Shown here one piece after another: positions 27,651 to 52,768 of a DNA stretch of 64,000 bases. The stretch's first letter is position 1. Each line of letters opens with the position of its first letter. Below the pieces are notes generated by a model. The model made no database searches. It worked only from the letters and a program-made list of their open reading frames with translations, and was not told the origin of the DNA. Where the stretch lies: the NCBI GenBank assembly GCA_025594325.1, contig JANHCV010000001.1, forward strand, positions 4,154,001-4,218,000. Direction: 5' to 3'. Source of the stretch: Blastocladiella emersonii ATCC 22665 (Eukaryota > Fungi > Blastocladiomycota). The position numbers and the translations under genes were made by a program.

Positions 27651-27761
27651 ATGGAGGAGGAGAGCAAAAAAGAGGAGAGTTTTGTTTTTACACGAATGAC
27701 CCACGAACGGGGGGCGAACAGCAGGATGGAGGGTACCGGCGCCAGGCCGGTTTCCCGAGAC

Positions 27762-29609: not shown

Positions 29610-29703
29610 TTTATTCGTTCTTTCATGCGTGTATGGATGCCAACAACAAATGTGTATATTCAAAGTCAGATCACAGCTGGTCTAGCATCGAAAGCGAACC
29701 CAT

Positions 29704-31577: not shown

Positions 31578-32888
31578 GGTGGAAGATGCGCTCTACTCTA
31601 GCGGCGTGCGGGAGCGCGCGTCAGATCCAGCGAGCGCAACGCAGTGCTGTGGCGCGTCGATGACATGAACGACGCGTCGGCGTGAGGATCGGGATCGGAG
31701 CGCTTACATGCGAGGGAGGGCGGTGGCGCGTAGATTGCCGGTGCTGCAGCGGCGTCGGTGACAGTGCGGCTGGTTGATGGCGCGAGCGAGCAGCAGCGGA
31801 GTGCGGGTGCCGGGCGGGATCGCGACGGCGGCAGCGACGGCGGCGCGAGACAGCGTTCCCGCACGACCAAGGCGTCGGTCACGTGCGCGGTGGCTCTGCG
31901 TGGCGGCGACGCGTCGCTTTCTCGCTGCCTTCTCCGCCCGTTTGCGGCATCCTCTGCCGTGGGCGGGTTCCTGGACACGTTCTCGGCCAGGCTGGCTCTC
32001 ATGTTCTCGAGCTCCCAGAGGTAGAAGCGACCTCGGGGCGGTCGGAACGACGGATCTTGTCCGCTTACTCGCCGGGCGTCCCGAGCAGGACCTCGGCCGC
32101 CCTCTCGGTTGCCTCGCCATGGCACGGCCCTGCAAGCCTTCCTGCAGCGAGCACCGAGCCTCTAGAGCGAGTTTCCCGCGGGATCAGGCCCTTGATCAAC
32201 GAAACCAGCGGGATCGGCCCCATGTGAGCGAACTGCCATTCTAACGTGAGCCTCCCCGAGTCGGCACTTGACCGAGGTGGTCGAGGGAGGGGTGCGAGAC
32301 AGCCGCGAGACAGCGCCGTTATCCGAGAGTAATGCCATTGGTCCCGGAGTGAACCGGCGGACTTCTCCGCGCCGCCGCGTCGCGCGTTTCGGCCGTGCAT
32401 GGCTTGCCAGCACGCTGCGACTACTCCCCCGCCGCCCATAAATACGGGCCTCGCCCCTCCACCCCTCTCGCTCTGATCCGGTTTGGTGTCCCGACCTTTT
32501 GCGTCGCCTCTGGTACTTGCACCGTCCCATGTATCATAAGTCCCCGGTCCCGGTCCCCCGAGCCCGCGTCGCCGCGTCGCCGCGCTGCTGTGATCCTGCC
32601 CCTCTGCGCGGATCCTGATTGCTATCTATGATCATCCCTCCACCTCCCGCCCGCCTGCGCTACATGCAGCGGTATGCAGCGCGAAGCCTCTGACGCGTCG
32701 GATCCGCTCCGGCAGTAGCGGCAGCAGCTCCTCGACCCACGGACCACGGACCGCCCGCATCGACCTTGCCGACGACGCGATCCGCTAACCCAACCCTCCC
32801 TCGCTCGCTCTCTCCAGGATTGCGCAACCCGCTGCATCTTGCACACTCGACCCTCGCGCAGATTGCTGCCGCCACCACCACCATCACC

Positions 32889-34184
32889 ATGTCGCTCCCG
32901 ACCAACGGCGTCACCGTCGTCCTCGGCTCCCAGTGGGGCGACGAGGGCAAGGGCAAGCTCGTCGACGTGCTCGCGCAGGAGGCCGACGTCGTCGCCCGCT
33001 GCCAGGGCGGCAACAACGCCGGCCACACGATCGTCGTCGACGGCAAGAAGTTCGACTTCCACATGCTGCCGTCGGGCCTCATCAACCCCGACTGCATCTC
33101 GGTCATCGGCAACGGCGTCGTCGTGCACCTGCCCTCGCTGTTCGCCGAGCTCGAGACCACCGAGAAGAAGGGCATCCCGTGCGCCGGCCGCCTCTTCGTC
33201 TCGGCCCGCGCCCACCTCGTCTTCGACGTGCACCAGATCGTCGACGGCCTGCGCGAGCTCGAGCGCGGCGGCTCCACCATCGGCACCACCCGCAAGGGCA
33301 TCGGACCGGCCTACTCGTCCAAGGCCTCGCGCTCGGGCCTGCGCGTCCACCACCTCTTCAACTTTGACGAGTTTGCCGAGCACTTCACCAAGTTCGTCGC
33401 CAACCGCAAGAAGCGCTACGGCGACTTCGACTACGACGTGGCCGCCGAGCTCGACCGGTATCGCGCCTACGCCGAGCGCCTGCGCCCCATGGTCATCGAC
33501 ACCGTGTCCTACATGAACAAGTCGATTGTCGCCAAGAAGCGCGTCCTCGTCGAGGGCGCCAACGCCGCCATGCTCGACATCGATTTCGGCACCTACCCCT
33601 ACGTCACCTCCTCCAACACCACCGTCGGCGGCGTGTGCACCGGTCTCGGCATCGCGCCCACCCGCATCGCCAAGGTCATCGGCGTCGTCAAGGCGTACAC
33701 GACGCGCGTCGGCGGCGGCCCGTTCCCGACCGAGCAGCTCAACTCGGTCGGCGAGCACCTGCAAACGGTCGGCGCCGAGTTCGGCGTGACCACGGGCCGC
33801 AAGCGCCGGTGCGGCTGGCTCGACATGGTCGTGCTCAACTACTCGCACGCCATCAACGGGTACACGTCCATCAACCTGACCAAGCTCGACGTGCTCGACC
33901 AGCTGCCCGAGGTCAAGATCGGCGTCAAGTACACGCACACGCCAACAGGAGAGGTGCTCGACTCGTTCCCCGCCGATCTCAAGTTCCTGTCCGAGTGCGA
34001 GGTCACCTACGAGACCTTCCCCGGCTGGATGACCGACATCACCAAGGTCCGCAAGTGGGACGACCTGCCCGTCAACGCCCAGAAGTACGTGCGCCGCATC
34101 GAGGAGCTCATGGGCGTGCCCGTCGAGTGGATCGGCGTCGGGCCCGGCCGCGAGGCCCTCGTGTCGGTGCCCCTGCGCAACTAG
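32889..34184 (+). CDS. ADE12: Adenylosuccinate synthetase
   Basis: [93 protein letters not shown]. Intronless, 431 aa. Confidence 0.97.
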
Positions 34185-34449: not shown

Positions 34450-34836
34450 CGCGTGCCTCGACCGCCTCATCGGACTTGGGATTAAACCACCGTTCGATGA
34501 GAGCGTTGCCAAGGAACGAGAAAAGCCGCCGTTCGTCACGAGCCGTTTGTTTCCTGAATCGCAAGTGAACTCGCGCGTCACGACCACGGCCATGGCCGCC
34601 GAGACAAATTTGTCGTACCAAAACAAGTGATAGAGGTCGCAACGGCCCTTTAGCTCGGCACTCTCCGCTCAGCGACGATCATGACCATGGACTCACGAGT
34701 TCAAGGTGTCCTGCTGAGTGATTGAACGAAGAAGAAGTTCGAAGCCGACTACTTCAAAGAACGGTGAGGCTGTACGTCGCGGCCGCGCCCATAACCATGG
34801 TCATCGAGAATACCCAACGAGAATCAGGACGCACGG
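34450..34836. repeat. Diverged outer extension of the inverted repeat (left)
   Basis: Matches the reverse complement of ~51553-52016 in blocks, e.g. CGACCACGGCCATGGCCGCCGAGAC vs CGACCACGACCATGGCCATCGAGAC and AGCCGACTACTTCAA vs AGCCGAGGACTTCAA, with indels. Outer limit approximate. Confidence 0.7.
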
Positions 34837-35129
34837 GCACAACAGCCTCGCTGAGCAGGTTCACCGTGGCCGCGGCCACGGCCATCGTTAGATCGATGGT
34901 ACCTTTCTGCTTGCCAGTAACCATGCCTGACCACACAACTTGGACAAGCAAGGACGCAAAACGAGATTGCGCAGGGACGGGCGGAAAACGAGAACGCGAC
35001 CACCAACCACTACGACCACGAACCACTCAGCCACGAGAAAATATAAGCATACACACACGACAACTACTATTGAAGAATACAACTAGGAGATCACACCCGA
35101 GAAACACACACAACCGAAACAAAAGAAAC

Positions 35130-37049
35130 TTAGGCAAGGAGGGCGACGACGATGGCCGCGGCCGCGACGGCAACGGCCGAGCCTGCAGCAACACCAGCCG
35201 CAGAGCTGACCTTGGACGACGACGGGGCACCAGCACTGGTCGAGAGGGCCTGGACGGCGGGGATGGCCGACTCGGAGTAGTCGTCCTTGACGGCGGCGGC
35301 GACGAACGCGGCCGACTCGGCGGTCAGGTCCTGGATCGTGGGCAGCGTCGCGACGTAGGCCGGGTTGTCGTTGGCCTTGACGGCAATCTCGCGGTTCAGG
35401 TCGTCGCGGACGGCGTTGAGCGCGGCCTCGGCGGCGCGCATCTTGGCAATGGCGACCTCGCGCGGGATCATGGGCATGAGCTTGGTGATGAGGACCTCGG
35501 GCATGGGCGCGACGGCGGCGAGCTGGTAGTCCTGCGCCGTGATCGTGGTCGTGGTCGTCGAGTTGGCGGCGGCGAGAGCCGTGACGTTGGTCTGGTTGGC
35601 GGGGGCAGCAGCGGGGGCGGTGCCGTTGAAGGGAGCCGTGGCGTTGACGCTGAGCGGGGTCGGGAACACGGCCGAGGTCGCCGTCGCCGTCTTGGTAACC
35701 GTGGCCGAGGCCGAGGCCGTGGCGGTGGAAGTCGAGTTACTGGCGGCCTCGCCCTCGCGCAGCGCACGGAGCGCGCGCTGGGCACGCTCGCCGGGGCCGA
35801 CGTTGTTGGGGACCGAGTCGTACGTGTAGCACAGGCGCGAGCGGTAGTAGAGCATGTCGCGGTTGGTGTAGCGCGACTCGTACAGGACGGTGCCGGCCGA
35901 CGCCTCGACCTTGAGCTCGCCCGCGGCCGTGTCGAGGTTGACAAAGTTGGCGGGGCTCAGTCCCTGCCACTATGTTACGAATGCGCGCGATGGAATCGTT
36001 TGGTCAGTCACTGGTTTGAGATGCGAGGAATGCGGGTGGTGAGGGGCGGGCGGGGATGTGAAAAGCGGTGAAGTGGGACCACGGCCAGCTCCCTCGACCA
36101 CTCCCTCGACCCCCTCGACCCCCAGAAACAACACAGATATCGTACCGTGGCCCAAAGGAGGTCGATATAGCAATGGTGGGCCCAGAAAGTCGGGTCGGCG
36201 GGCGAGATGTTGGGGTCGCCCATGTGGCCGCCGACGATGCCGTGCCACGAGTTGTGGGGCGAGTTCTCGATGGTGTTGGACATCTCGCCAAAGGTGCGGA
36301 AGCGGCGCATGGCCTCGGCCATGACCTGCGACTGCGGGAGCCACTCGAAGGCGCCGTTGTTGGGCGCGACCCACGGGTTGCGGGTGACGATGCGGCCCGT
36401 GTCGTCGGTCAGGCCGGCGAAGGGCGCCGAGAGTGGGCCGGCCTTCATCTCGCCGAGGCCCGAGGTGGTGAAAATGCTCGAGCGGGTCGGCGCGCGCGAG
36501 TCGGCGAGCTCGTTCCAGTACGGGAGGCCGGTCAGCACGTTGTTGGACGCCTTGATGAGCGCGTCCTCGAACTCGACGAGCAGGGCGCGGTGCATCGGCA
36601 GGAACTGCGTCGTCATGTGGTAGCGCATCCCGGTGCGGTGCTTGCGCGTGAACTGGTCGAGCTGGCCCGAGCGCTTCATGCTATTATTGACGAGGACGTG
36701 GTGGTGGTGGTGCGAGGGTGAGTGACGATGGATCTCGAGTCGAAAGAGGGAGTCGCGGCCGTGATCGGAAAGGTGATCGCGCGGGTAGTCGCTGCTCGGC
36801 CCCAAGAAACACATCAGTAGAGAAAAGAAAAGAAAAGTACCTCATGATGGCATCGGAAAAGGCCTTCTTCTCGGTGGCCGAGAGCGACGAGAAGGCGCGG
36901 CGGGTGCGGATACCGTTCGGGCACGCGGCGGCGGGGACCGCGGTCGGGGCGGGGGCGGCCGTCGCGCGGGTCGAGGTCGACGCACGCTGGGCGTTGGCGA
37001 GGTGCGCAAGCGCAAGGAGGAGCAGGAGGAGGGGCGCGGCGCGAGCCAT
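35130..37049 (-). CDS. Secreted tyrosinase-like (type-3 di-copper) protein with GPI-like tail, copy 1 (3 exons)
   Basis: Signal peptide; RTRRAFSSLSATEKKAF; CuA RKHRTGMRYHMTTQFLPMHR; GLPYWN; CuB HNSWHGIVGGHM...DPTFWAHHCYID; LCYTYD; S/T/A linker and hydrophobic C-terminus. Confidence 0.85.
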
Positions 37050-38172
37050 GGTCGATCGTCTATTGTATAGAAGGGAGTCTATGGGGGTGGGTGGCAAAGG
37101 GGGTGGAGGAGGGAGCTCGGGAGCAGGATCACTCGAGGAAATGCGCAAGTAGAAGACGACGGCGGATGAGGACTCGTTCGTGGAGACGGGGCGGGGAGGG
37201 CAAGCTTCTTATACGCGGCCGCCCGCTCGCTGAGCCTTGACGCAGCGGCGACGTGGCCGAAGAGCTGGGCCAGCAGCATGGCCAGCGCGGGCCAAGCAAG
37301 CGGGCGATGGATGGTGGCTCGGCTCGGGCCCGCCCGTATCCACCTCGCTGGGAACGGTCGGGCATGGGCAAGCGGCAGGATTTTCTTTCCCGTTCACTCG
37401 CCGTGTGTACGGGCAGCGATTAATATCGCAGCACAAAGAAGCTGAGACGGCCGAGGCAAGCGCAGTCGGGCCACAAGCGCAAGCAACGCGTCGAGCTGTT
37501 GCATCGTTTCACTCTTGGCGCGTCGCTGTCGGCGTCGACGGAGGTGGCTGCGGTGTTTCACGCGTGGTAGAGCGGGGCCGCGATCATCCATCGGGTGCGC
37601 TGCAAACCGTAGATCCAAATTGGACGACCCTGCAACGTGTTCCTAGTTCTTCCGCGGCGACCCGGCACGGGCGCCGACGCCGACGCCGAGTGACGTCGTC
37701 TGTCCGGAGAAACGGGACCCAGAGGCCGACCGGCATGGCGGCGTTGATCAGTCCGTGAGCTCGGTGCTCGGCCAGCCGGGTCATTCCATGCTGCGGGCTT
37801 TTCCAACTGTTGCAAGCTGTTCTTCGCGGCGCTCGGCCATCTTGAAGCGGGGGGCAAAGAAACGTGTTCTTGCCCGTTGGTTGCTGTTGCACTCGGGCAC
37901 CCTCGTCTTGGCGTCCCGCCGCCCGGCCCAGCAGCAGCGCCCTGTTCGCGTGAAATTATTCAAGCGCTTCGCAAGAGTGATGCAACGCTCCCGGAGGTGA
38001 AGCTGGGTCGCGCCGTGTCGCGTCGCGTCGCGCGCGTGTGTGACTCCGTGATAGCAATCGTGATCGCAGTGATCGCGATGGGATCACATGGCTCGGCTGC
38101 TGCTGCGCCACCCACACACCCACACCGCAGCACCCCGAGGTCGTCATTTTCATCATCGGGAGTGGCGAGGGC

Positions 38173-39711
38173 TTGCACCAACGAGCGACCGACTGGACCC
38201 ACCCAACCTCGCGTGCTCGCTCGTGCACTTGCTCCTCTCACGGCAACAAAAAACGTCATGTAAACACCATGAAGCAGGTGCACAACGACACCACGCACTC
38301 GTGGTCCACCTCGTGGGTTGGCTGGGCGCACCAGCATCATCCCGGGCATATCGCGAGCGGCGGCGAGCCTTGGGTCCCACCCACCCCGCCGTCCGTTCCA
38401 TCATCACCGACACGCGAGTGGTCGAGCGCGCTGCGCGAATCGAAGGAGATGCGCGACTGTCATATGTGCTCCTTGGCGAGCGGCGGGCACTCTTTGAGCT
38501 CGCTTGCATCGGGAGCTCGCACGCCAACATTCTGCGCCGTAACTGAGCCATATCGGGACCGTGATTCGAACAGGCTCGCAGTGTCATTCGGCAGGCTGCC
38601 CGACGAGCTCGTCGCAAACATCGCGCTCAGGTATCTCGACCGGCGCTCACTCATGGCGCTTGCAGCAGCGTGCCGCCGCGTGCGAACGGCGGTGCTCGCG
38701 GACACGGCCGTCGTGCGTGGGCGGCTTCGCGTTGACCTTGGCCCGCTCGCTGGCCTGCTCGACGACGACCGCCTACGCCTCCTCGTGCAGACCGACTTTC
38801 GGTCCGTCGTCGAAGAGCACCCCGCGTGGAGCCGGGTCACGCTCGAACCTCTGACGCGTCCACGTGCGACGACGGAGCAGGAGCGCGCCGTCGATGCGCA
38901 GCAGCACACCCAACAGCTCCGCTGCAACGTGGGCACATCAACCGAGCCCGCTCCTCAAATCTGTACGGTCCCGTGGGTGCGCGAGCTGGACCTGAGCGAG
39001 GCCCGCGTGACGCACCTCGATGCGCTGACGCACGGCATGGCGCCGAGCTCCCCGTCAGCAGCACCGACCTCGTCTTCGCTCGACTTGCGACATCTCCATC
39101 TCGCGGGCACTCGCCACTTTTTCCCGGCCCAGCAGTTCCGGCTACCCGCCGCCGCCGCCCCTTCAACCGTCGCAGCATTCCCGCCACCCCCGTCACCGCC
39201 GCGCAACGATCAGGACTGCGATGTCGTGCCGCCAGTGCAACCAACACTGCCGTCCGCGCTTCTGAACTCGCTCGAGCGGTACCCATGGATGTTCCACCTT
39301 CGCTCACTTTCGCTCGCCAACACGGTCGGCGTGACGGATACGACGCTCCACGCACTCGCGGCGCACCTCTGCCCCAATCTTGCCGAGCTTGACCTTGCGT
39401 ACTGCGACCACATCAGCGACGCGGGCGTGGCAGCGCTGCTCCGTGCCCCTGCTACCGTGGCGCCGAGGCTCTGGCAGCGCCTGCGGCTCACAGGATGCGT
39501 CCGTATCGAAGGAACGACGCTCATCGCCCCTGTCTCGGTGGTCCACCTCGATCTGTCACTTACAGCCGTTGGCGCCTCGGTGCTGAGCGAGTGCTGCAAC
39601 TCGCCGGCCGTGCTGTGGGTCAAGGCGCGCGCCTGCGCGTTCGTGGAGCCGGACGAGGCCCAAGCCGTGCAGCGTGCGTTCCGCGCCTCCGGTAAGACCT
39701 TGTTGATGTGA
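38173..39711 (+). CDS. F-box/leucine-rich-repeat protein, copy 1 (true start probably downstream, e.g. ATG 38449)
   Basis: F-box FGRLPDELVANIALRYLDRRSLMALAAACRRVR. AMN1-type LRRs LRSLSLANTVGVTDTTLHALA, CPNLAELDLAYCDHISDAGVAAL, LQRLRLTGCVRI. Confidence 0.8.
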   Translation: MHQRATDWTHPTSRARSCTCSSHGNKKRHVNTMKQVHNDTTHSWSTSWVGWAHQHHPGHIASGGEPWVPPTPPSVPSSPTREWSSALRESKEMRDCHMCSLASGGHSLSSLASGARTPTFCAVTEPYRDRDSNRLAVSFGRLPDELVANIALRYLDRRSLMALAAACRRVRTAVLADTAVVRGRLRVDLGPLAGLLDDDRLRLLVQTDFRSVVEEHPAWSRVTLEPLTRPRATTEQERAVDAQQHTQQLRCNVGTSTEPAPQICTVPWVRELDLSEARVTHLDALTHGMAPSSPSAAPTSSSLDLRHLHLAGTRHFFPAQQFRLPAAAAPSTVAAFPPPPSPPRNDQDCDVVPPVQPTLPSALLNSLERYPWMFHLRSLSLANTVGVTDTTLHALAAHLCPNLAELDLAYCDHISDAGVAALLRAPATVAPRLWQRLRLTGCVRIEGTTLIAPVSVVHLDLSLTAVGASVLSECCNSPAVLWVKARACAFVEPDEAQAVQRAFRASGKTLLM

Positions 39712-40706
39712 ACAGACTTGGAGGATTAATAGTCTTGAATCAATGGGTGTCGCTACTCGTGTGCGACGAGTTTGAGCGGATTTTGCGGTACTGGCCATGC
39801 TCACGAGCTTCAAGCGTGCGGCTTAGATCAGGTGGGTGGCGCAGCGCGTCGACGAGCCTTCAACCGTTGGGCCCGATGGCCTTGAAAGGAAGCTCATCTC
39901 ATCGCCGATTCCACCGCCGTGGCCAAACACGTCCTGAACGAACACTGCGCCAATCACGACGCGGGAATGGCTGACCCACGCTGCCTTCCGCACATCGCGA
40001 ACGCGCACGCGCACGCTCACCGGCGGGCGTCGGTTGAATTCAGACCCCATCAAGTCGTAGCGGCGCCACAATGCGCCTGGTCACCGGGCCATGCATACGC
40101 CGTCAGCCTGACCAACCTTGGCCCGAGCTTAGCCAGCCAGCTACCGGGCGATGTGAGCAACGCGACGGGTGCGGCATCGCCCCATTCCGCTCCACCCGCT
40201 GCGTTTCCAGCGACTGGTGCAGCGTTCGGGCAGGCCGTGCATGGGCGCTCATTTCGCGGCGGTTGATTGGCTTTCCCGACTTGGCACGCACGCGTGGGCC
40301 CAGTCGGCGATACCCGGAGCAACGAACCCGTACGGCGTCGTGGGTGGGGTGGCTCAGCAGCAGCAACGGCGGTAACCTCAGCGGCACCTTGCGCTCAAAG
40401 AGGAAACGTGTCGGCTCTTCTCGCTGCTTCGCGCGGATACGGTTCCGACCTGCGCCGAAATGAGCTGTAATGAGCAGCAAATGAGACGTAGCGACTGTGC
40501 TGCATGGAGCGGCGGGCGGGCGAGCGAACGCTGGGTCGTTTCGGTGATCCGCCTCGCTCACCCTGGCTGGCGACCTCACGCTCGTCTCGCCCGCCGACCG
40601 CCCGCCCGAGGGTACAAATACCGCGCCTCCCCCGCGCCCCCGGCTCTCGATCCTCACCAAACAGTCAACCCAACCCTTCTCTCAACGCTATCACCAACCG
40701 GCCAAG

Positions 40707-41702
40707 ATGCAGATCATCGCCATCCTCGCCTCCATGGCCCTCCTCGCCGTCACGGCTTCGGCCGCCCCCGCCCCCTCGGCCTCGACCGGCGTCACCTGCG
40801 CCAAGACCTTCACGCCCGGCTTCAAGTCAACCATGACGTGCCACTGCCTCGCGTCGTGCACCGTCACCGGCCGCTGCTGCCCCGACTACGACGCCTTCTC
40901 CGCCTCGGCCTCGGCCTTCATGCGCTCCAAGGACATGGTGATCGCGCGCCGCGGCCCGACCACCGACCCCGCCAAGGACAAGCCGTACCACAAGTCCGAG
41001 CCCGCCATCACGGCCATGACGACCAAGGGCACCGGCAAGGACGCGGTCGCGCTGCTCACGGTGCGCCAGTGCACCTTCGAGGACGTGGCGCGCGCGCCCG
41101 CCAACCCGGGCAACGGCGACATGACGACCATGCAGATGCCCAAGTGGGAGCTGCGCGAGTGCAGCGAGGGCTACGACGTGGTCGCGCACAAGGCCGGCGG
41201 CAACGGCCAGCTCGTCGCCTTCGAGGACGCGGTCAAGGTGCCCGCGGCGGTGCGCGTCGCCGTCGGCCCGCTGCCGCCGACCGAGATCGCCACGATCCAG
41301 CCGTACCCGGCGCCGTGGAACGTCATGTACTACGCCGAGGTCAAGGGCGCGTCGGCCGCGTCGGCGTACAAGGCGGCGCTGGTGCACGAGCCGCTCGTGT
41401 CCGGGTTCACGGCCGACCTCAACAAGCGCGCGTCGGGCAAGCTCGGGTTCGACCCGACGACGGGCCGCAAGTGGTCGGTGCGCGCGGCCACGTTCGGCAC
41501 GGCCGAGCCCGTCAAGTACGCGCCGACGACGCAGGACGTGACGGCGCTCCAGCTCGACGAGGAGTTTGCGTCGCGCGCGCACTCGGCCAACTACCACGTC
41601 ACGCCGACCCGCGGCGGCTACCTGCGCCGCGTGTTTGACGGCCAGCAGTGGGTCGACACGGTCGATGCCCGCGGCAACCGCGTCGTGGCTTCCACTCTCT
41701 AA
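40707..41702 (+). CDS. Secreted protein with N-terminal somatomedin-B-like domain, copy 1 (331 aa)
   Basis: Signal peptide MQIIAILASMALLAVTASA; motif CHCLASCTVTGRCCPDY; intronless with strong codon bias. C-terminal domain not recognised. Confidence 0.8.
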   Translation: MQIIAILASMALLAVTASAAPAPSASTGVTCAKTFTPGFKSTMTCHCLASCTVTGRCCPDYDAFSASASAFMRSKDMVIARRGPTTDPAKDKPYHKSEPAITAMTTKGTGKDAVALLTVRQCTFEDVARAPANPGNGDMTTMQMPKWELRECSEGYDVVAHKAGGNGQLVAFEDAVKVPAAVRVAVGPLPPTEIATIQPYPAPWNVMYYAEVKGASAASAYKAALVHEPLVSGFTADLNKRASGKLGFDPTTGRKWSVRAATFGTAEPVKYAPTTQDVTALQLDEEFASRAHSANYHVTPTRGGYLRRVFDGQQWVDTVDARGNRVVASTL

Positions 41703-41763
41703 GGTGTCTTTTGGATGTGTCCTCTCCTCCCCTTTTACCCTATCTAGTCCTAGAAGTGTTTCC

Positions 41764-41779
41764 GTGTGTGTGTGTGTGT
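41764..41779 (+). repeat. (GT)8 microsatellite in the 3' region of the SMB-like gene; mirrored as (AC)8 at 44610-44625
   Basis: Read directly; same length in both arms. Confidence 0.9.
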
Positions 41780-42313
41780 CTCCCCTTGTGTGCCTTATCC
41801 TGTCGGTATCCCCTCCCAAAAGTGCAATACAAACTTAACGCTCAGCGTGTTCTTCTCCAACGTTTGATTGTGGCTACGAGTGAGCTTTGGCCCGTGGTCT
41901 GCGCGAAGAAAAGAAGAGAAACTACAAAACATGAGTACGGAGAGAGTGGCCGCGCTCAGTTGGTGTCCCGGCACTCGTTCGTTCCGCGGAGCGTCGCAAA
42001 GGACGCGTCGAGATATCACGTGCGCATGAGCCTCACGTGCAGCTGTCTCACGCGGCCGCGCGCCGCGCGCCGCCGTGCCCCATTTAGGCGACGGCGCGCT
42101 TCGTAAAACAGCCACGGCACAGTCGAGTGGTTAGAACACGCAGGACCCCGCACCCTGGAATGGGGATGCCGCCGCCTGCGCTGAACGAAGCGCTTAGCTT
42201 TTGCTTAGCTTTTGCTTCGGACCCCGATCCTGCCCTTCGGTTGTTATCAATCCTATTCTCTGCAATCAAAGTTTTTTTTGACGGGAGAAACTGCATATGC
42301 GACGACTTCTCGA

Positions 42314-43790
42314 TCAGTCGAACAGGTCCACGTCGCCCACGTTGACGCCGTCAATCAGGATCTCGCCCGAAGCCCACTGGACGAGGCGGAAGATGGCTGT
42401 CGCAAGGTTAACCTTGCTGGCACCCGTGCGGCCGCAGCACGCGAGGCGCGAGCGCGGCGGGACCTTGAAGTTGATGTCGTGCAGCAAGAAACCCGTCGTC
42501 GCCGAGTACTGGGCCCTCAGGTCGCGCACCTCGACGGCGCCGTGCGCGGGCCAGCTGGGCGGGATCTGTGCCGCCGCGAGGCCGCCTAAGGGCTTCTGCT
42601 CGATGTGGTGCAGCCAGTGGTCTACGCTCGGCGCTGTTGACGTCTATTCCGACCATGGACTGCATGCGAACCGGCTACATGGCGCAGTCGACCGCGTTGA
42701 GTGCGTACGACAGGATGGTGCCCATAAGCGCGGGGTCCATCCACGAGCGCGACAGCACGAGCACGAAGCCCGTCGACAGCACAATGAAGGCACCGAGCAG
42801 GTCGGTGCGCACCGTCAGCCACCGGTTGCTGACCCACAGGAAGAAGAAGGCGCGGTGGTTGACGTCGATGCGCTTGTACAGCTCGGTCAGGAACCGGGTC
42901 TCGTGGCGGTAGGTACGCGCGGATCACCAACGTGCGCGTGAGCGTCTCGGAGAAGAGCGAGAAACTCGGGCTGCGCGTCAACGAGTCGATGCGCTTGAGC
43001 TAGCGGCTGGTCGCGAGGACCAGGTTCGACAGAGAAAGGTAGGCGAGGCCGATCGGGACGAGGAACACGAGGAACGCGGGCACGGCGATCACGATCAGGA
43101 CGAGAATTGACGCGAGCTGGTACCCGTTGATGAGGCCGTCGACCAGGTCGCGGGTGAGCTCGCGGTCGATGGCCTTCATGTCGCGCGACAAGCGGTTGAT
43201 GATGCGGCCGAGCTGCGTCACGTCCAAGAAGCGGATCTTGGCTTACAGCAGGTTGGGGAACACCTCGTCGTGTAGGTATCGCGAAGCGCGCACCGACCCG
43301 CGGAACTGCACGACGAGGCGCGCTCCGATGGCCACGAGCGTGAGTGCGCCGATCAGCACGTAGACGAAAATGAACCACGTTACGCCGACGCGTGGGCCAC
43401 CGGCGGCCAGCATGTTGTAAGCGTTGGTCCAGTACTGCATACACAGGTCCTGGCCGACGAGGCCGAGCTGCTTCAGGAACAGGAACGCGATCAGGAACGC
43501 CCGGCACGGCAGGCCAACGGCTGCGTCGATCCATGCACGGTACACGCGCCACTCGACTCCGTCGCAGGAACAGTCCTTCTCGATGACTGTGTGGCCCATT
43601 TGCGCGTTCTCGGCGTCAGGAGCGGCCGCAGTGACGGCGGTCGCGCTTTCCTCGGACGCCACCGTGGCGGCCGACGACTTCTCGACGCTGCCCGTGGACG
43701 GCAGGCTGGGCTGGCGCGGGCGAGGGTACTCGAACGCGAGCAGCGCGGCAGCACTGTTTTTTTTGGCAGCGAACAAGCATCTGGCACGTA
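42314..43790 (-). pseudogene. ABCC/MRP (Ybt1/Bpt1-like) transporter pseudogene fragment: linker, TMD2 and N-half of NBD2
   Basis: LL*AKIRFLDVTQLGRIINRLSRD, TSR*LKRIDSLTRSP, SNRWLTVRTDLLG, M*PVRM, PPSWPAHGAVEV, degenerate Walker A CCGRTGASKVNL. Stops at 43243, 43000 and 42675, at least two frameshifts, truncated at the arm boundary. Confidence 0.88.
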
Positions 43791-43837
43791 CTGCTCTCGG
43801 GGTCAGTGAGACAAGGCCGGCCACGTTCTTGAAGAAC

Positions 43838-43990
43838 CGCACCGCAAATTTTATCCCCATGAGTGTCCTCGACGCGGGCCGCGTCGCGCAGTTTAGGCTC
43901 ACCGCACGAGCTCATGCTGCAAGACGGCATCTTTCACTGCATGTGCCGTAAGGGCAACGACTTTGAATTGCTGTTGCTCGCCCCCCCCCC
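43838..43990 (+). pseudogene. Extreme C-terminal fragment of an ABCC transporter, in opposite orientation to the TMD2 fragment
   Basis: VLDAGRVAQF/(frameshift)GSPHELMLQDGIFHCMCRKGNDFELL resembles the ABCC C-terminal consensus V(L/M)DAG.V.E(F/Y)D.P..LL....F..MC..SG.L..L. Confidence 0.72.
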
Positions 43991-44686
43991 CAAGCAATCA
44001 GATCAACACCTCGATCACTGTGCATTCCTCCCCGACTCGCACCTCGCTATACCTATCGTTGGTCTGTTCGACTGATCGAGAAGTCGTCGCATATGCAGTT
44101 TCTCCCGTCAAAAAAAACTTTGATTGCAGAGAATAGGATTGATAACAACCGAAGGGCAGGATCGGGGTCCGAAGCAAAAGCTAAGCAAAAGCTAAGCGCT
44201 TCGTTCAGCGCAGGCGGCGGCATCCCCATTCCAGGGTGCGGGGTCCTGCGTGTTCTAACCACTCGACTGTGCCGTGGCTGTTTTACGAAGCGCGCCGTCG
44301 CCTAAATGGGGCACGGCGGCGCGCGGCGCGCGGCCGCGTGAGACAGCTGCACGTGAGGCTCATGCGCACGTGATATCTCGACGCGTCCTTTGCGACGCTC
44401 CGCGGAACGAACGAGTGCCGGGACACCAACTGAGCGCGGCCACTCTCTCCGTACTCATGTTTTGTAGTTTCTCTTCTTTTCTTCGCGCAGACCACGGGCC
44501 AAAGCTCACTCGTAGCCACAATCAAACGTTGGAGAAGAACACGCTGAGCGTTAAGTTTGTATTGCACTTTTGGGAGGGGATACCGACAGGATAAGGCACA
44601 CAAGGGGAGACACACACACACACACGGAAACACTTCTAGGACTAGATAGGGTAAAAGGGGAGGAGAGGACACATCCAAAAGACACC

Positions 44687-45682
44687 TTAGAGAGTGGAAG
44701 CCACGACGCGGTTGCCGCGGGCATCGACCGTGTCGACCCACTGCTGGCCGTCAAACACGCGGCGCAGGTAGCCGCCGCGGGTCGGCGTGACGTGGTAGTT
44801 GGCCGAGTGCGCGCGCGACGCAAACTCCTCGTCGAGCTGGAGCGCCGTCACGTCCTGCGTCGTCGGCGCGTACTTGACGGGCTCGGCCGTGCCGAACGTG
44901 GCCGCGCGCACCGACCACTTGCGGCCCGTCGTCGGGTCGAACCCGAGCTTGCCCGACGCGCGCTTGTTGAGGTCGGCCGTGAACCCGGACACGAGCGGCT
45001 CGTGCACCAGCGCCGCCTTGTACGCCGACGCGGCCGACGCGCCCTTGACCTCGGCGTAGTACATGACGTTCCACGGCGCCGGGTACGGCTGGATCGTGGC
45101 GATCTCGGTCGGCGGCAGCGGGCCGACGGCGACGCGCACCGCCGCGGGCACCTTGACCGCGTCCTCGAAGGCGACGAGCTGGCCGTTGCCGCCGGCCTTG
45201 TGCGCGACCACGTCGTAGCCCTCGCTGCACTCGCGCAGCTCCCACTTGGGCATCTGCATGGTCGTCATGTCGCCGTTGCCCGGGTTGGCGGGCGCGCGCG
45301 CCACGTCCTCGAAGGTGCACTGGCGCACCGTGAGCAGCGCGACCGCGTCCTTGCCGGTGCCCTTGGTCGTCATGGCCGTGATGGCGGGCTCGGACTTGTG
45401 GTACGGCTTGTCCTTGGCGGGGTCGGTGGTCGGGCCGCGGCGCGCGATCACCATGTCCTTGGAGCGCATGAAGGCCGAGGCCGAGGCGGAGAAGGCGTCG
45501 TAGTCGGGGCAGCAGCGGCCGGTGACGGTGCACGACGCGAGGCAGTGGCACGTCATGGTTGACTTGAAGCCGGGCGTGAAGGTCTTGGCGCAGGTGACGC
45601 CGGTCGAGGCCGAGGGGGCGGGGGCGGCCGAAGCCGTGACGGCGAGGAGGGCCATGGAGGCGAGGATGGCGATGATCTGCAT
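44687..45682 (-). CDS. Secreted somatomedin-B-like protein, copy 2
   Basis: Translation identical to 40707-41702. Confidence 0.8.
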   Translation of the reverse strand: MQIIAILASMALLAVTASAAPAPSASTGVTCAKTFTPGFKSTMTCHCLASCTVTGRCCPDYDAFSASASAFMRSKDMVIARRGPTTDPAKDKPYHKSEPAITAMTTKGTGKDAVALLTVRQCTFEDVARAPANPGNGDMTTMQMPKWELRECSEGYDVVAHKAGGNGQLVAFEDAVKVPAAVRVAVGPLPPTEIATIQPYPAPWNVMYYAEVKGASAASAYKAALVHEPLVSGFTADLNKRASGKLGFDPTTGRKWSVRAATFGTAEPVKYAPTTQDVTALQLDEEFASRAHSANYHVTPTRGGYLRRVFDGQQWVDTVDARGNRVVASTL

Positions 45683-46677
45683 CTTGGCCGGTTGGTGATA
45701 GCGTTGAGAGAAGGGTTGGGTTGACTGTTTGGTGAGGATCGAGAGCCGGGGGCGCGGGGGAGGCGCGGTATTTGTACCCTCGGGCGGGCGGTCGGCGGGC
45801 GAGACGAGCGTGAGGTCGCCAGCCAGGGTGAGCGAGGCGGATCACCGAAACGACCCAGCGTTCGCTCGCCCGCCCGCCGCTCCATGCAGCACAGTCGCTA
45901 CGTCTCATTTGCTGCTCATTACAGCTCATTTCGGCGCAGGTCGGAACCGTATCCGCGCGAAGCAGCGAGAAGAGCCGACACGTTTCCTCTTTGAGCGCAA
46001 GGTGCCGCTGAGGTTACCGCCGTTGCTGCTGCTGAGCCACCCCACCCACGACGCCGTACGGGTTCGTTGCTCCGGGTATCGCCGACTGGGCCCACGCGTG
46101 CGTGCCAAGTCGGGAAAGCCAATCAACCGCCGCGAAATGAGCGCCCATGCACGGCCTGCCCGAACGCTGCACCAGTCGCTGGAAACGCAGCGGGTGGAGC
46201 GGAATGGGGCGATGCCGCACCCGTCGCGTTGCTCACATCGCCCGGTAGCTGGCTGGCTAAGCTCGGGCCAAGGTTGGTCAGGCTGACGGCGTATGCATGG
46301 CCCGGTGACCAGGCGCATTGTGGCGCCGCTACGACTTGATGGGGTCTGAATTCAACCGACGCCCGCCGGTGAGCGTGCGCGTGCGCGTTCGCGATGTGCG
46401 GAAGGCAGCGTGGGTCAGCCATTCCCGCGTCGTGATTGGCGCAGTGTTCGTTCAGGACGTGTTTGGCCACGGCGGTGGAATCGGCGATGAGATGAGCTTC
46501 CTTTCAAGGCCATCGGGCCCAACGGTTGAAGGCTCGTCGACGCGCTGCGCCACCCACCTGATCTAAGCCGCACGCTTGAAGCTCGTGAGCATGGCCAGTA
46601 CCGCAAAATCCGCTCAAACTCGTCGCACACGAGTAGCGACACCCATTGATTCAAGACTATTAATCCTCCAAGTCTGT

Positions 46678-48216
46678 TCACATCAACAAGGTCTTACCGG
46701 AGGCGCGGAACGCACGCTGCACGGCTTGGGCCTCGTCCGGCTCCACGAACGCGCAGGCGCGCGCCTTGACCCACAGCACGGCCGGCGAGTTGCAGCACTC
46801 GCTCAGCACCGAGGCGCCAACGGCTGTAAGTGACAGATCGAGGTGGACCACCGAGACAGGGGCGATGAGCGTCGTTCCTTCGATACGGACGCATCCTGTG
46901 AGCCGCAGGCGCTGCCAGAGCCTCGGCGCCACGGTAGCAGGGGCACGGAGCAGCGCTGCCACGCCCGCGTCGCTGATGTGGTCGCAGTACGCAAGGTCAA
47001 GCTCGGCAAGATTGGGGCAGAGGTGCGCCGCGAGTGCGTGGAGCGTCGTATCCGTCACGCCGACCGTGTTGGCGAGCGAAAGTGAGCGAAGGTGGAACAT
47101 CCATGGGTACCGCTCGAGCGAGTTCAGAAGCGCGGACGGCAGTGTTGGTTGCACTGGCGGCACGACATCGCAGTCCTGATCGTTGCGCGGCGGTGACGGG
47201 GGTGGCGGGAATGCTGCGACGGTTGAAGGGGCGGCGGCGGCGGGTAGCCGGAACTGCTGGGCCGGGAAAAAGTGGCGAGTGCCCGCGAGATGGAGATGTC
47301 GCAAGTCGAGCGAAGACGAGGTCGGTGCTGCTGACGGGGAGCTCGGCGCCATGCCGTGCGTCAGCGCATCGAGGTGCGTCACGCGGGCCTCGCTCAGGTC
47401 CAGCTCGCGCACCCACGGGACCGTACAGATTTGAGGAGCGGGCTCGGTTGATGTGCCCACGTTGCAGCGGAGCTGTTGGGTGTGCTGCTGCGCATCGACG
47501 GCGCGCTCCTGCTCCGTCGTCGCACGTGGACGCGTCAGAGGTTCGAGCGTGACCCGGCTCCACGCGGGGTGCTCTTCGACGACGGACCGAAAGTCGGTCT
47601 GCACGAGGAGGCGTAGGCGGTCGTCGTCGAGCAGGCCAGCGAGCGGGCCAAGGTCAACGCGAAGCCGCCCACGCACGACGGCCGTGTCCGCGAGCACCGC
47701 CGTTCGCACGCGGCGGCACGCTGCTGCAAGCGCCATGAGTGAGCGCCGGTCGAGATACCTGAGCGCGATGTTTGCGACGAGCTCGTCGGGCAGCCTGCCG
47801 AATGACACTGCGAGCCTGTTCGAATCACGGTCCCGATATGGCTCAGTTACGGCGCAGAATGTTGGCGTGCGAGCTCCCGATGCAAGCGAGCTCAAAGAGT
47901 GCCCGCCGCTCGCCAAGGAGCACATATGACAGTCGCGCATCTCCTTCGATTCGCGCAGCGCGCTCGACCACTCGCGTGTCGGTGATGATGGAACGGACGG
48001 CGGGGTGGGTGGGACCCAAGGCTCGCCGCCGCTCGCGATATGCCCGGGATGATGCTGGTGCGCCCAGCCAACCCACGAGGTGGACCACGAGTGCGTGGTG
48101 TCGTTGTGCACCTGCTTCATGGTGTTTACATGACGTTTTTTGTTGCCGTGAGAGGAGCAAGTGCACGAGCGAGCACGCGAGGTTGGGTGGGTCCAGTCGG
48201 TCGCTCGTTGGTGCAA
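46678..48216 (-). CDS. F-box/LRR protein, copy 2
   Basis: Translation identical to 38173-39711. Confidence 0.8.
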   Translation of the reverse strand: MHQRATDWTHPTSRARSCTCSSHGNKKRHVNTMKQVHNDTTHSWSTSWVGWAHQHHPGHIASGGEPWVPPTPPSVPSSPTREWSSALRESKEMRDCHMCSLASGGHSLSSLASGARTPTFCAVTEPYRDRDSNRLAVSFGRLPDELVANIALRYLDRRSLMALAAACRRVRTAVLADTAVVRGRLRVDLGPLAGLLDDDRLRLLVQTDFRSVVEEHPAWSRVTLEPLTRPRATTEQERAVDAQQHTQQLRCNVGTSTEPAPQICTVPWVRELDLSEARVTHLDALTHGMAPSSPSAAPTSSSLDLRHLHLAGTRHFFPAQQFRLPAAAAPSTVAAFPPPPSPPRNDQDCDVVPPVQPTLPSALLNSLERYPWMFHLRSLSLANTVGVTDTTLHALAAHLCPNLAELDLAYCDHISDAGVAALLRAPATVAPRLWQRLRLTGCVRIEGTTLIAPVSVVHLDLSLTAVGASVLSECCNSPAVLWVKARACAFVEPDEAQAVQRAFRASGKTLLM

Positions 48217-49339
48217 GCCCTCGCCACTCCCGATGATGAAAATGACGACCTCGGGGTGCTGCGGTGTGGGTGTGTGGGTGGCGCAGCAGCAGCCGAGCCA
48301 TGTGATCCCATCGCGATCACTGCGATCACGATTGCTATCACGGAGTCACACACGCGCGCGACGCGACGCGACACGGCGCGACCCAGCTTCACCTCCGGGA
48401 GCGTTGCATCACTCTTGCGAAGCGCTTGAATAATTTCACGCGAACAGGGCGCTGCTGCTGGGCCGGGCGGCGGGACGCCAAGACGAGGGTGCCCGAGTGC
48501 AACAGCAACCAACGGGCAAGAACACGTTTCTTTGCCCCCCGCTTCAAGATGGCCGAGCGCCGCGAAGAACAGCTTGCAACAGTTGGAAAAGCCCGCAGCA
48601 TGGAATGACCCGGCTGGCCGAGCACCGAGCTCACGGACTGATCAACGCCGCCATGCCGGTCGGCCTCTGGGTCCCGTTTCTCCGGACAGACGACGTCACT
48701 CGGCGTCGGCGTCGGCGCCCGTGCCGGGTCGCCGCGGAAGAACTAGGAACACGTTGCAGGGTCGTCCAATTTGGATCTACGGTTTGCAGCGCACCCGATG
48801 GATGATCGCGGCCCCGCTCTACCACGCGTGAAACACCGCAGCCACCTCCGTCGACGCCGACAGCGACGCGCCAAGAGTGAAACGATGCAACAGCTCGACG
48901 CGTTGCTTGCGCTTGTGGCCCGACTGCGCTTGCCTCGGCCGTCTCAGCTTCTTTGTGCTGCGATATTAATCGCTGCCCGTACACACGGCGAGTGAACGGG
49001 AAAGAAAATCCTGCCGCTTGCCCATGCCCGACCGTTCCCAGCGAGGTGGATACGGGCGGGCCCGAGCCGAGCCACCATCCATCGCCCGCTTGCTTGGCCC
49101 GCGCTGGCCATGCTGCTGGCCCAGCTCTTCGGCCACGTCGCCGCTGCGTCAAGGCTCAGCGAGCGGGCGGCCGCGTATAAGAAGCTTGCCCTCCCCGCCC
49201 CGTCTCCACGAACGAGTCCTCATCCGCCGTCGTCTTCTACTTGCGCATTTCCTCGAGTGATCCTGCTCCCGAGCTCCCTCCTCCACCCCCTTTGCCACCC
49301 ACCCCCATAGACTCCCTTCTATACAATAGACGATCGACC

Positions 49340-51259
49340 ATGGCTCGCGCCGCGCCCCTCCTCCTGCTCCTCCTTGCGCTTGCGCACCTCGCCAACGCCC
49401 AGCGTGCGTCGACCTCGACCCGCGCGACGGCCGCCCCCGCCCCGACCGCGGTCCCCGCCGCCGCGTGCCCGAACGGTATCCGCACCCGCCGCGCCTTCTC
49501 GTCGCTCTCGGCCACCGAGAAGAAGGCCTTTTCCGATGCCATCATGAGGTACTTTTCTTTTCTTTTCTCTACTGATGTGTTTCTTGGGGCCGAGCAGCGA
49601 CTACCCGCGCGATCACCTTTCCGATCACGGCCGCGACTCCCTCTTTCGACTCGAGATCCATCGTCACTCACCCTCGCACCACCACCACCACGTCCTCGTC
49701 AATAATAGCATGAAGCGCTCGGGCCAGCTCGACCAGTTCACGCGCAAGCACCGCACCGGGATGCGCTACCACATGACGACGCAGTTCCTGCCGATGCACC
49801 GCGCCCTGCTCGTCGAGTTCGAGGACGCGCTCATCAAGGCGTCCAACAACGTGCTGACCGGCCTCCCGTACTGGAACGAGCTCGCCGACTCGCGCGCGCC
49901 GACCCGCTCGAGCATTTTCACCACCTCGGGCCTCGGCGAGATGAAGGCCGGCCCACTCTCGGCGCCCTTCGCCGGCCTGACCGACGACACGGGCCGCATC
50001 GTCACCCGCAACCCGTGGGTCGCGCCCAACAACGGCGCCTTCGAGTGGCTCCCGCAGTCGCAGGTCATGGCCGAGGCCATGCGCCGCTTCCGCACCTTTG
50101 GCGAGATGTCCAACACCATCGAGAACTCGCCCCACAACTCGTGGCACGGCATCGTCGGCGGCCACATGGGCGACCCCAACATCTCGCCCGCCGACCCGAC
50201 TTTCTGGGCCCACCATTGCTATATCGACCTCCTTTGGGCCACGGTACGATATCTGTGTTGTTTCTGGGGGTCGAGGGGGTCGAGGGAGTGGTCGAGGGAG
50301 CTGGCCGTGGTCCCACTTCACCGCTTTTCACATCCCCGCCCGCCCCTCACCACCCGCATTCCTCGCATCTCAAACCAGTGACTGACCAAACGATTCCATC
50401 GCGCGCATTCGTAACATAGTGGCAGGGACTGAGCCCCGCCAACTTTGTCAACCTCGACACGGCCGCGGGCGAGCTCAAGGTCGAGGCGTCGGCCGGCACC
50501 GTCCTGTACGAGTCGCGCTACACCAACCGCGACATGCTCTACTACCGCTCGCGCCTGTGCTACACGTACGACTCGGTCCCCAACAACGTCGGCCCCGGCG
50601 AGCGTGCCCAGCGCGCGCTCCGTGCGCTGCGCGAGGGCGAGGCCGCCAGTAACTCGACTTCCACCGCCACGGCCTCGGCCTCGGCCACGGTTACCAAGAC
50701 GGCGACGGCGACCTCGGCCGTGTTCCCGACCCCGCTCAGCGTCAACGCCACGGCTCCCTTCAACGGCACCGCCCCCGCTGCTGCCCCCGCCAACCAGACC
50801 AACGTCACGGCTCTCGCCGCCGCCAACTCGACGACCACGACCACGATCACGGCGCAGGACTACCAGCTCGCCGCCGTCGCGCCCATGCCCGAGGTCCTCA
50901 TCACCAAGCTCATGCCCATGATCCCGCGCGAGGTCGCCATTGCCAAGATGCGCGCCGCCGAGGCCGCGCTCAACGCCGTCCGCGACGACCTGAACCGCGA
51001 GATTGCCGTCAAGGCCAACGACAACCCGGCCTACGTCGCGACGCTGCCCACGATCCAGGACCTGACCGCCGAGTCGGCCGCGTTCGTCGCCGCCGCCGTC
51101 AAGGACGACTACTCCGAGTCGGCCATCCCCGCCGTCCAGGCCCTCTCGACCAGTGCTGGTGCCCCGTCGTCGTCCAAGGTCAGCTCTGCGGCTGGTGTTG
51201 CTGCAGGCTCGGCCGTTGCCGTCGCGGCCGCGGCCATCGTCGTCGCCCTCCTTGCCTAA
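49340..51259 (+). CDS. Secreted tyrosinase-like protein with GPI-like tail, copy 2; exons 49340-49548, 49709-50243, 50420-51259
   Basis: Mirror of 35130-37049. Introns GTACTT...AATAG and GTACGA...CTGAC...CATAG restore one frame through CuA, CuB and LCYTYD. Confidence 0.85.
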
Positions 51260-51552
51260 GTTTCTTTTGTTTCGGTTGTGTGTGTTTCTCGGGTGTGATC
51301 TCCTAGTTGTATTCTTCAATAGTAGTTGTCGTGTGTGTATGCTTATATTTTCTCGTGGCTGAGTGGTTCGTGGTCGTAGTGGTTGGTGGTCGCGTTCTCG
51401 TTTTCCGCCCGTCCCTGCGCAATCTCGTTTTGCGTCCTTGCTTGTCCAAGTTGTGTGGTCAGGCATGGTTACTGGCAAGCAGAAAGGTACCATCGATCTA
51501 ACGATGGCCGTGGCCGCGGCCACGGTGAACCTGCTCAGCGAGGCTGTTGTGC

Positions 51553-52016
51553 GAGTGCGTCCTGATATTCGTTGCGTCGTTCTAGTTGCGTCTTCCGCTT
51601 GCTTGCTTGGCAATGAACGGACTCGATGTCCATGATCACGTCGAGTGAGTGATCGCTCTGGCCGTGGCCATTGGCGCGGTCGCGAGGCGTAGCCTTAACG
51701 TTTTTCGCATTCCAGCTTGAAGTCCTCGGCTGACTGCTTTTGCCCTGCTCTGTTGCTGGACAGGAAGCGCTTTGAGCCTGACAGCCCATGTCCACGGTCC
51801 TTACTGAGCAGGGAGCGTTACACAACATGGCCCTTCGCGGCCGCCCTATCAACTGCTGCTCGCTCAAGATCCGGTCGTGGATCGTCTCGATGGCCATGGT
51901 CGTGGTCGCTACACGAAAGCTCGAGCGGTGAGTCAGGGAACAACGTGTTCCTGACCAAAGACTTGCTTCTGTCCTACTAGGCAAGGTTTCAATCCACGTC
52001 CAAGGTCGAGAACCAC
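51553..52016. repeat. Diverged outer extension of the inverted repeat (right)
   Basis: Its reverse complement aligns in blocks to 34450-34836, with about 100 bp extra sequence on this side. Limits approximate. Confidence 0.7.
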
Positions 52017-52177
52017 GGACGATGACAAGTACTCGAGAGCATCGACGCGAAAACAGCACCGCGAGACGTGACAAGTCGAGATGGCGGATCAACAAAAGGG
52101 GATGTGTATGTACACTCAGAGAGATCGAGATAGGGTAGGGATAGGTAGCACGCAAGGGACAGAAGTAGGCAAACGAC

Positions 52178-52768
52178 CTAGAACTCCTGCGAGTCGCTCT
52201 CGTCCTTGGCGGCGGCTATGGGGAACGAGCGCGAGTTCAAGTGTCAGCGTCGTCTTCACGAGTACCTCCGAGCAAGGAGAAGTGCGCGTACCCTTTTTCT
52301 TGGTGGCGGCGGGCGCGCCCGAGCCGGTCAGGAGGGTGGGCTGAATGTTGGGCAGAACACCACCCTGCGCGATCGTAACCGAGTGCAGCAGCTTGGACAG
52401 CTCCTCGTCGTTGCGGATCGCAAGCTGCAGGTGGCGGGGGATGATGCGGGCCTTCTTCTGGTCGCGCGCGGCGTTGCCCGCGAGCTCGAGAATCTCGGCC
52501 GTCAGGTACTCGAGGACCGCGGCCAGGTACACGGGCGCGCCGGCACCCGTGCGCGCAGAGTAGTTGCCCTTGCGCAGCATGCGGTGCAGGCGGCCGACGG
52601 GGAACTGCAGACCGGCCTTGGACGAGCTGGAGGATGCGAGTAGTCAAGGGGTCAGCAAGGTTCCACTCGATCCGAGCGACCCAGACAAGCGCCGACGTAC
52701 CGCGAGCTCGACTTCTTCTCGGACGACGCCGCGTCAGCCTTACCGCCCTTGCCGCCCTTGCCAGCCAT
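52178..52768 (-). CDS. HTA: Histone H2A with C-terminal SQEF motif (H2A.X-type); two introns
   Basis: [72 protein letters not shown]. The second intron (GTACGC...CTGAC...CATAG) gives the terminal exon [12 protein letters not shown]. Confidence 0.93.

Follow-up and report, generated by a model that had tools for sequence, protein, structure and literature searches.

A two-tier chromosomal palindrome with identical gene-bearing arms and a diverged outer rim in Blastocladiella emersonii

The locus described here lies in a window of 64,000 nucleotides (nt) from the zoosporic fungus Blastocladiella emersonii ATCC 22665 (GCA_025594325.1, contig JANHCV010000001.1, 4,154,001-4,218,000), and coordinates are positions in this window unless a contig position is named. 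Between the genes for adenylosuccinate synthetase (ADE12) and histone H2A, the window holds a large palindrome, consisting of two inverted arms and a central spacer. Each arm bears three intact genes, which encode a tyrosinase, an F-box protein with leucine-rich repeats (F-box/LRR), and a secreted cysteine-rich protein referred to here as somatomedin-B-like (SMB-like). The spacer contains the decayed remainder of an ABCC transporter gene. A first-pass annotation, made from the sequence alone, had described identical 7.49-kb arms with no net indel around a 1.74-kb spacer, a position between ADE12 and H2A, the absence of a transposase, and the doubling of three genes. All of these points hold: Pfam matches identify the two neighbors on either side, no transposase domain is present among the largest arm open reading frames (ORFs) scanned, and the third gene, the F-box/LRR gene, is unannotated but has full-length orthologs.

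In a direct base-level comparison, the left arm (34837-42325) and the reverse complement of the right arm (44064-51552) agree at 7,489 of 7,489 nt, with no mismatches and no indels. For a match of this length chance cannot matter. The (GT) tract (approximately 41764-41781) and the run of eight thymines (T8, 42273-42280), previously noted as alike in both arms, fall within this letter-identical sequence. A repeat search recovers only one inverted pair in the 30-56 kb part of the window, reaching 34812-42332 / 44057-51577, and blastn of the window against itself gives an inverted match of 7,514 nt at 99.93% identity (34812-42325 / 44064-51577). The perfect arms are extended on their outer side by 25 nt with five mismatches (80% identity). 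The inner arm edge is sharp. Inverted homology is absent from within the spacer of 1,738 nt, as its MAFFT alignment is noise and self-blastn yields only a 16-nt palindrome. The features of the locus are collected in Table 1.

Table 1. Features of the palindrome and its immediate neighbors, in window coordinates.
Feature	Position	Strand	Description
ADE12 (adenylosuccinate synthetase)	32889-34184	+	Pfam PF00709, E 5e-185; annotated, 431 aa; single-copy
Left outer tier	34506-34803		probable diverged remnant of the original duplication; collinear with the arms
Left transition zone	34812-34836		25 nt, 5 mismatches to mirror 51553-51577
Left arm	34837-42325		7,489 nt, reverse complement of the right arm
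Tyrosinase, left copy	35130-37049	-	527 aa, introns; annotated gene
F-box/LRR gene, left copy	38173-39711	+	intact ORF; Pfam F-box-like and LRR_6
SMB-like gene, left copy	40707-41702	+	secreted cysteine-rich protein, 331 aa; annotated
Inner end of left arm	42000-42325		non-coding; short dispersed repeat
Spacer	42326-44063	-	ABCC (MRP-type) transporter pseudogene fragment; single-copy depth
Right arm	44064-51552		mirror of the left arm; arm contigs at about 2x spacer depth
SMB-like gene, right copy	44687-45682	-
F-box/LRR gene, right copy	46678-48216	-
Tyrosinase, right copy	49340-51259	+
Right outer tier	51658-51984		diverged partner of 34506-34803; about 70-72 extra nt between tier and arm
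Histone H2A exon	52116-52580	-	Pfam Histone_H2A_C, E 7e-15, and Histone, E 6.5e-10; single-copy
DUS3 (tRNA dihydrouridine synthase)	53212-54933	-	Pfam Dus, E 1.7e-50

Structures of this kind can arise during assembly, either as a fold-back chimera or by the head-to-head joining of haplotypes or alleles. For the joining of haplotypes there is a documented precedent in the asexual animal Adineta vaga, whose palindromes were gone in a later assembly (PMC8494291). The B. emersonii genome was assembled from PacBio HiFi reads (SRR19593111; mean length 10.5 kb, approximately 186x) into 21 contigs of 34.27 Mb, with just 1.2% duplicated BUSCOs; the contigs were manually refined, and Illumina GAIIx reads were used for Pilon polishing (PMC9730499). 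The palindrome was compared with Logan contigs of four public runs, placed on 40400-46000, an interval that takes in both arm-spacer junctions. By their depths, years, and the adaptor sequences at loose contig ends, run X1 corresponds to the HiFi data, X2 to the Illumina data, and X3 and X4 to 454 data, as a loxP linker and the adaptor used in 454 sequencing appear at the loose ends of the last two. All runs come from the one sample that was assembled, so they provide evidence that does not depend on the assembler but does depend on the culture.

Spacer contigs have a depth of 118-119 in X1 and 30-33 in X2, and arm contigs one of 225-291 and 45-61, respectively. A contig found only at a paralog, itself single-copy and located at another place in the genome, stands at 144 and 23. 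Since arm depth is about twice that of the spacer contigs, there is one copy of the spacer and there are two of the arm, the very pattern that the first-pass annotation had set out for a genuine palindrome. The spacer contigs (42296-42455, 43116-44092, and 43780-44093) enter each arm by 29-30 nt with no differences, that is by k-1, one letter below the 31-letter bridging rule. Such overlaps are the outcome of a de Bruijn graph in which a collapsed repeat branches into two continuations. Both arm-spacer junction words occur at spacer depth, in HiFi, Illumina, and 454 data, and the right arm-flank junction (51523-51583, 61 nt in which each 31-mer crosses the boundary) is found in four of four runs with a share of 1.00 for the three words sampled. 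The boundaries at 42325, 44064, and 51552, for which junction PCR had been suggested, are all supported in this way by words from the public runs. A heterozygous inversion or a mis-join would miss one of the two spacer-end junctions and leave the arms at 1x, whereas the arms have about twice the depth of both the spacer and the single-copy paralog in two technologies, and no junction is missing among the two inner ones and the right outer one. In addition, the mean HiFi read exceeds the 7.5-kb arms. An assembly artefact is thus already largely refuted and must be regarded as extremely improbable: the palindrome is real.

The same depths bear on the number of copies. The locus had been called an amplicon, a term that does not fit, because the arms (225-291 in X1, 45-61 in X2) stand at two copies relative to the single-copy range (118-144 and 23-33), and nothing points to additional amplification or to dosage selection. 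The structure is a duplication. One apparent arm variant, diverged by about 1.1%, was seen in 454 contigs and has been rejected: the contig threads into a third SMB-like copy at 3.13 Mb of the contig, its loose end matches this copy, and the variant positions are the differences of that copy.

The history of the palindrome is best read from its outer side. Beyond the transition zones lies a second, diverged tier of homology, formed by 34506-34803 on the left and 51984-51658 on the right, in inverted order. The two tiers match at 196 of 297 positions (66%), which corresponds to a Jukes-Cantor distance of 0.45. Their local alignment score is 43, compared with 11.6 +/- 1.4 (maximum 19) for 500 dinucleotide shuffles (z = 22.8, with 0/500 reaching the observed value), and with 14 in the wrong orientation. 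The tier is separated from the arm by 9 nt on the left and 81 nt on the right, which points to an indel of about 70 nt. Moving outwards, identity drops from 100% to 80% over 25 nt and then to 66%. The presence of about 300 nt of collinear inverted homology at 66% outside the arms argues for a duplication of much greater age than the 0% divergence of the arms implies. Most simply, the locus can be read as an old inverted duplication: the indel cut off its rim, which was then no longer corrected, and its core is still being homogenized or was recopied very recently.

The most probable explanation of the locus, to which we assign a probability of roughly 0.7, is therefore a genuine chromosomal palindrome that would go back to an old in-place inverted duplication and whose core would be kept identical by recombination between the arms. 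According to this model, a native stretch with the F-box/LRR, tyrosinase, and SMB-like genes would have been duplicated in place and inverted long ago, the original unit extending to about 34506 on the left and about 51984 on the right. Fold-back priming is a plausible route of formation (PMC10622511). Intrachromosomal recombination between the arms, by non-crossover gene conversion or by one very recent arm-long re-copying, would then keep the inner 7.49 kb identical, while the outermost 300 nt or so, past the 70-nt indel, would have evaded correction and drifted to 66%. The outcome would be three genes kept in two co-evolving copies.

The third SMB-like copy offers a comparison for this model. 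It is found 1.04 Mb away on the same contig, at about 3.13 Mb of JANHCV010000001.1 (L003:9255-11101), between ferrochelatase and MBOAT genes. It differs from the arm copy at 49 of 996 nt with no indel (95% amino-acid identity), with a synonymous divergence (dS) of 0.10 and a dN/dS of 0.35. The homology is confined to 39906-41831 and includes about 800 nt upstream of the gene; its flanks are 70-83% identical, and the outer rim of the palindrome has diverged more than these flanks. The fact that this copy has diverged while the two arm copies are identical speaks in favor of the model.

It could alternatively be proposed that the arms are identical because they are young and that no homogenization is going on. 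The palindrome would then have arisen very recently in one step, a break close to the ABCC fragment having led to fold-back priming or to replication template switching. Such an event would leave a sharp inner boundary and arms without a single difference, the (GT)n and T8 tracts included, and a spacer-bounded inverted duplication is the expected product of fold-back priming (PMC10622511); the approximately 9 nt of ABCC homology reaching into the arm edge could be a junction microhomology. However, a recent duplication should have a sharp edge toward unrelated sequence at its outer end as well, and it leaves unexplained both the collinear 300-nt homology at 66% and the stepwise drop in identity that leads to it. 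This explanation is accordingly considered rather unlikely.

Several points nevertheless weigh against an old palindrome with a homogenized core. No conversion event between the arms has been directly seen, and the earlier description of the locus as self-homogenizing is supported by inference. With zero differences, continuous conversion looks the same as one recent round of re-duplication that overwrote an older and diverged repeat. The structure is known from one strain, the nearest genomes being just 78-82% identical in ADE12, and the decay of the ABCC fragment gives no date for the palindrome, since the fragment may have been dead before the palindrome formed. Finally, the support from reads covers 40400-46000 and the right outer junction, and derives from runs of a single, assembled sample.

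The center of the palindrome has a history of its own. Pfam ABC_membrane and ABC_tran match ORFs on the minus strand of the spacer, and all the transporter pieces lie on this strand in their natural order: the linker, the second transmembrane domain (TMD2), and the first 65 or so residues of the second nucleotide-binding domain (NBD2). Among PDB structures, TMD2 matches residues 1069-1142 of ABCC2, and NBD2 matches residues 1295-1364 of MRP1 and 1201-1265 of ABCC5. The reading is interrupted by three in-frame stops (43245-43243, 43002-43000, and around 42680) and two frameshifts, which marks the spacer as a pseudogene fragment of about 28% of an MRP-type transporter. The public annotation calls this fragment a 405-aa gene (42314-43915, minus strand). 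The decay has not gone to an extreme, as GC content at third codon positions (GC3) is still 0.8-0.95. Around the NBD2 Walker A motif (42321-42485), approximately 130-165 nt recur with at least 95% identity in contigs of another locus, probably a live ABCC paralog at a different site of the genome.

The NBD2 homology ends at 42317, about 9 nt within the arm edge; further into the arm there is no ABC remnant, and GC3 periodicity is flat. Because no ABC remnant enters the arm, both ends of the fragment appear to be true breakpoints that meet the arm ends, and captured central DNA, whether filler or insertion, would therefore fit better than a gene decaying in its original place. In the palindrome model, the decayed ABCC center would either have been taken up as filler during the formation of the palindrome or have been inserted afterwards. 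In practice it would hold the arms apart, which stabilizes large inverted repeats.

The inner ends of the arms (42000-42330 and mirror 44060-44390) hold a short dispersed repeat. The summed depth of this zone reaches about 800, compared with 118 for single-copy sequence, revealing several copies elsewhere in the genome; loose contig ends occur at 42118, 42181, 42203, and 42206, and a single-copy contig omits 42029-42123. A tRNA or short interspersed element (SINE) identity was considered for this repeat and rejected, as ARAGORN finds no tRNA and Rfam gives no match at the gathering threshold or at E <= 1. The repeat might have been the seed of the palindrome. A stronger version of this idea would make the ABCC fragment the cargo of a Pack-type transposon and the inner-arm repeats its terminal inverted repeats, with the neighboring 7 kb being copied by fold-back. 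Such an origin would account for the copies of the 42000-42330 zone elsewhere in the genome and for the coincidence of both cut ends of ABCC with the arm ends. However, the contigs from other loci share only about 42118-42206 and a stretch before 42028, diverging some 120 nt before the arm edge, and the locus has neither a visible target-site duplication nor a transposase. A transposon-seeded palindrome is thus an unlikely explanation.

Perfect inverted repeats of 7.5 kb are also good substrates for recombination, which raises the possibility of a regulatory role. If the arms crossed over, the spacer would change its orientation, as in a flip-flop cassette, and inversions between long inverted repeats have a precedent in Candida (PMC6591007). 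Since the arms are identical, a flip of the spacer would be invisible in the junction words, and flipping by crossover is likely in principle. Similarly, the two SMB-like genes of the palindrome converge on the spacer, so that convergent read-through could yield double-stranded RNA from a hairpin-RNA locus. However, the spacer is a dead gene fragment, without a promoter or a gene on which orientation could have an effect. The Pfam scan of arm ORFs shows no recombinase domain, and neither these ORFs nor the spacer have the features of a site-specific invertible element. A functional cassette or hairpin locus is hence considered very unlikely.

The three genes carried by the arms differ in how well they are known. 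The central exon of the tyrosinase gene matches Pfam PF00264 (E 7.5e-24), with a GC3 of 0.88-0.91. Resistant sporangia of B. emersonii are reportedly melanized, according to the work of Cantino, and the duplicated tyrosinase may bear on this process. In neither arm does the public annotation include the F-box/LRR ORF (38173-39711 on the plus strand and 46678-48216 on the minus strand). This ORF has orthologs that align end to end in B. britannica (E 8e-44), Allomyces arbusculus, and Catenaria, with one F-box match in each of Allomyces, Catenaria, and B. britannica. Its GC3 is just 0.76, a weak codon bias that is unusual for the B. emersonii genome. The SMB-like gene has a GC3 of 0.98 and a weak match to Pfam PF01033 (E 1e-5). 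An exhaustive HMMER search found 36 relatives of its product, those named being from Sorochytrium, and no Pfam family was found in any of the 10 relatives scanned.

The neighborhood of the palindrome indicates where it arose. The gene order in B. emersonii is PX, RNase PH, a gene of unknown function, ADE12, the palindrome, H2A, and DUS3. In Allomyces, DUS3 and ADE12 are neighbors, followed by a gene of unknown function, RNase PH, and PX. The F-box gene adjoins PX-RNase PH in B. britannica and directly follows DUS3 in Catenaria. DUS3 thus appears, from these gene orders, to be an ancestral neighbor of both ADE12 and the F-box gene. As the F-box gene adjoins the same genes in B. britannica and Catenaria, it can be considered native to the neighborhood, and the palindrome would therefore have arisen in place. 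A synteny comparison of the ADE12-H2A interval had been proposed in the first-pass annotation; no tyrosinase, SMB-like gene, or H2A lies beside ADE12 in Allomyces, Catenaria, or B. britannica. Dating by synteny was considered and discarded, because these relatives, with only 78-82% identity in ADE12, are too distant to date the duplication.

Some further observations concern the surroundings. PX, RNase PH, ADE12, DUS3, and the F-box gene form a loose cluster (22889-34184 and 53212-54933 in the window) that has been kept across Blastocladiomycota with several single-gene changes of orientation. ADE12 and DUS3 are divergent neighbors in Allomyces, and convergent and 19 kb apart in B. emersonii. 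The H2A gene stands alone beside the palindrome, with no H2B partner evident between H2A and DUS3. A diverged tandem repeat, with units of about 120 nt and about 70% identity, lies at 17507-17925 in the window self-blast.

Structures of this kind are already known, in the form of the Y-chromosome palindromes and the long inverted repeats of Candida. In the human and ape Y palindromes P1-P8, gene conversion maintains the similarity of the arms (Rozen et al. 2003, via PMC5490193; PMC6790999). They resemble the B. emersonii palindrome in having inverted arms that bear genes and are identical or nearly so, a unique spacer, and an identity attributed to intrachromosomal conversion, with arms that in B. 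emersonii would likewise evolve in concert (PMC5490193, PMC6790999). The differences are in size, the Y palindromes spanning tens of kb to 1.45 Mb compared with 7.5 kb here, which makes the present one 100 to 1000 times smaller; in location, as it lies on an ordinary fungal chromosome and not on a non-recombining sex chromosome; in cargo, which does not consist of testis-specific gene families; and in the evidence for conversion, which is deduced here from the diverged outer tier rather than from a cross-species comparison.

In Candida albicans, long inverted repeats, for example a pair of about 3.2 kb with 99.5% identity placed about 11.3 kb apart, give rise to inversions, changes in copy number, and loss of heterozygosity (Todd et al. 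2019, PMC6591007). They share with the present case a fungal chromosome and kilobase-scale inverted copies, kilobases apart, that contain several complete ORFs and intergenic DNA (PMC6591007). The B. emersonii palindrome, on the other hand, has longer arms (7.5 kb), a shorter spacer (1.7 kb), 100% identity, and no known rearrangement phenotype. Fold-back inverted duplications (Al-Zain et al. 2023, PMC10622511) also have an inverted duplication with a central spacer as their expected product; they are de novo events that usually end in dicentric chromosomes or terminal duplications, in contrast to the interstitial, stable, and apparently old structure found here. Several collinear gene blocks arranged as palindromes in one genome have additionally been discussed as a means of sex-free gene correction in two asexual animals, Folsomia candida (PMC5490193) and Adineta vaga (AV13). 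The A. vaga palindromes were artefacts and have been withdrawn (PMC8494291), whereas the arms in B. emersonii are identical and supported by reads.

The main text of the genome paper contains neither "palindrom" nor "inverted" (PMC9730499). At the level of a single locus, the value of the finding is modest: a striking structure of a public HiFi assembly is real, and the annotation can be corrected, as a conserved F-box gene was missed twice and a pseudogene was called as a gene. The locus also provides a clean natural example, in an early-diverging fungus, of a two-tier palindrome with a perfect core and a decayed rim.

The more interesting lead is a genome-wide pattern. It is conceivable, though doubtful at present, that B. 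emersonii has a habit of keeping many gene blocks as perfect, continually copy-corrected palindromes with fragments of dead genes at their centers. B. emersonii is not known to have a sexual cycle. If true, such a habit would parallel, on the autosomes of a fungus, the way in which Y chromosomes preserve or co-evolve genes without meiotic recombination, and the palindromes would arise by a recurrent fold-back or template-switch mechanism that was overlooked in the genome paper. The organism is culturable, has a genome of 34 Mb, and is already covered by HiFi data, which suggests that, if the pattern extends across the genome, B. emersonii would be a tractable system for the origin of large palindromes and the correction of their arms outside sex chromosomes.

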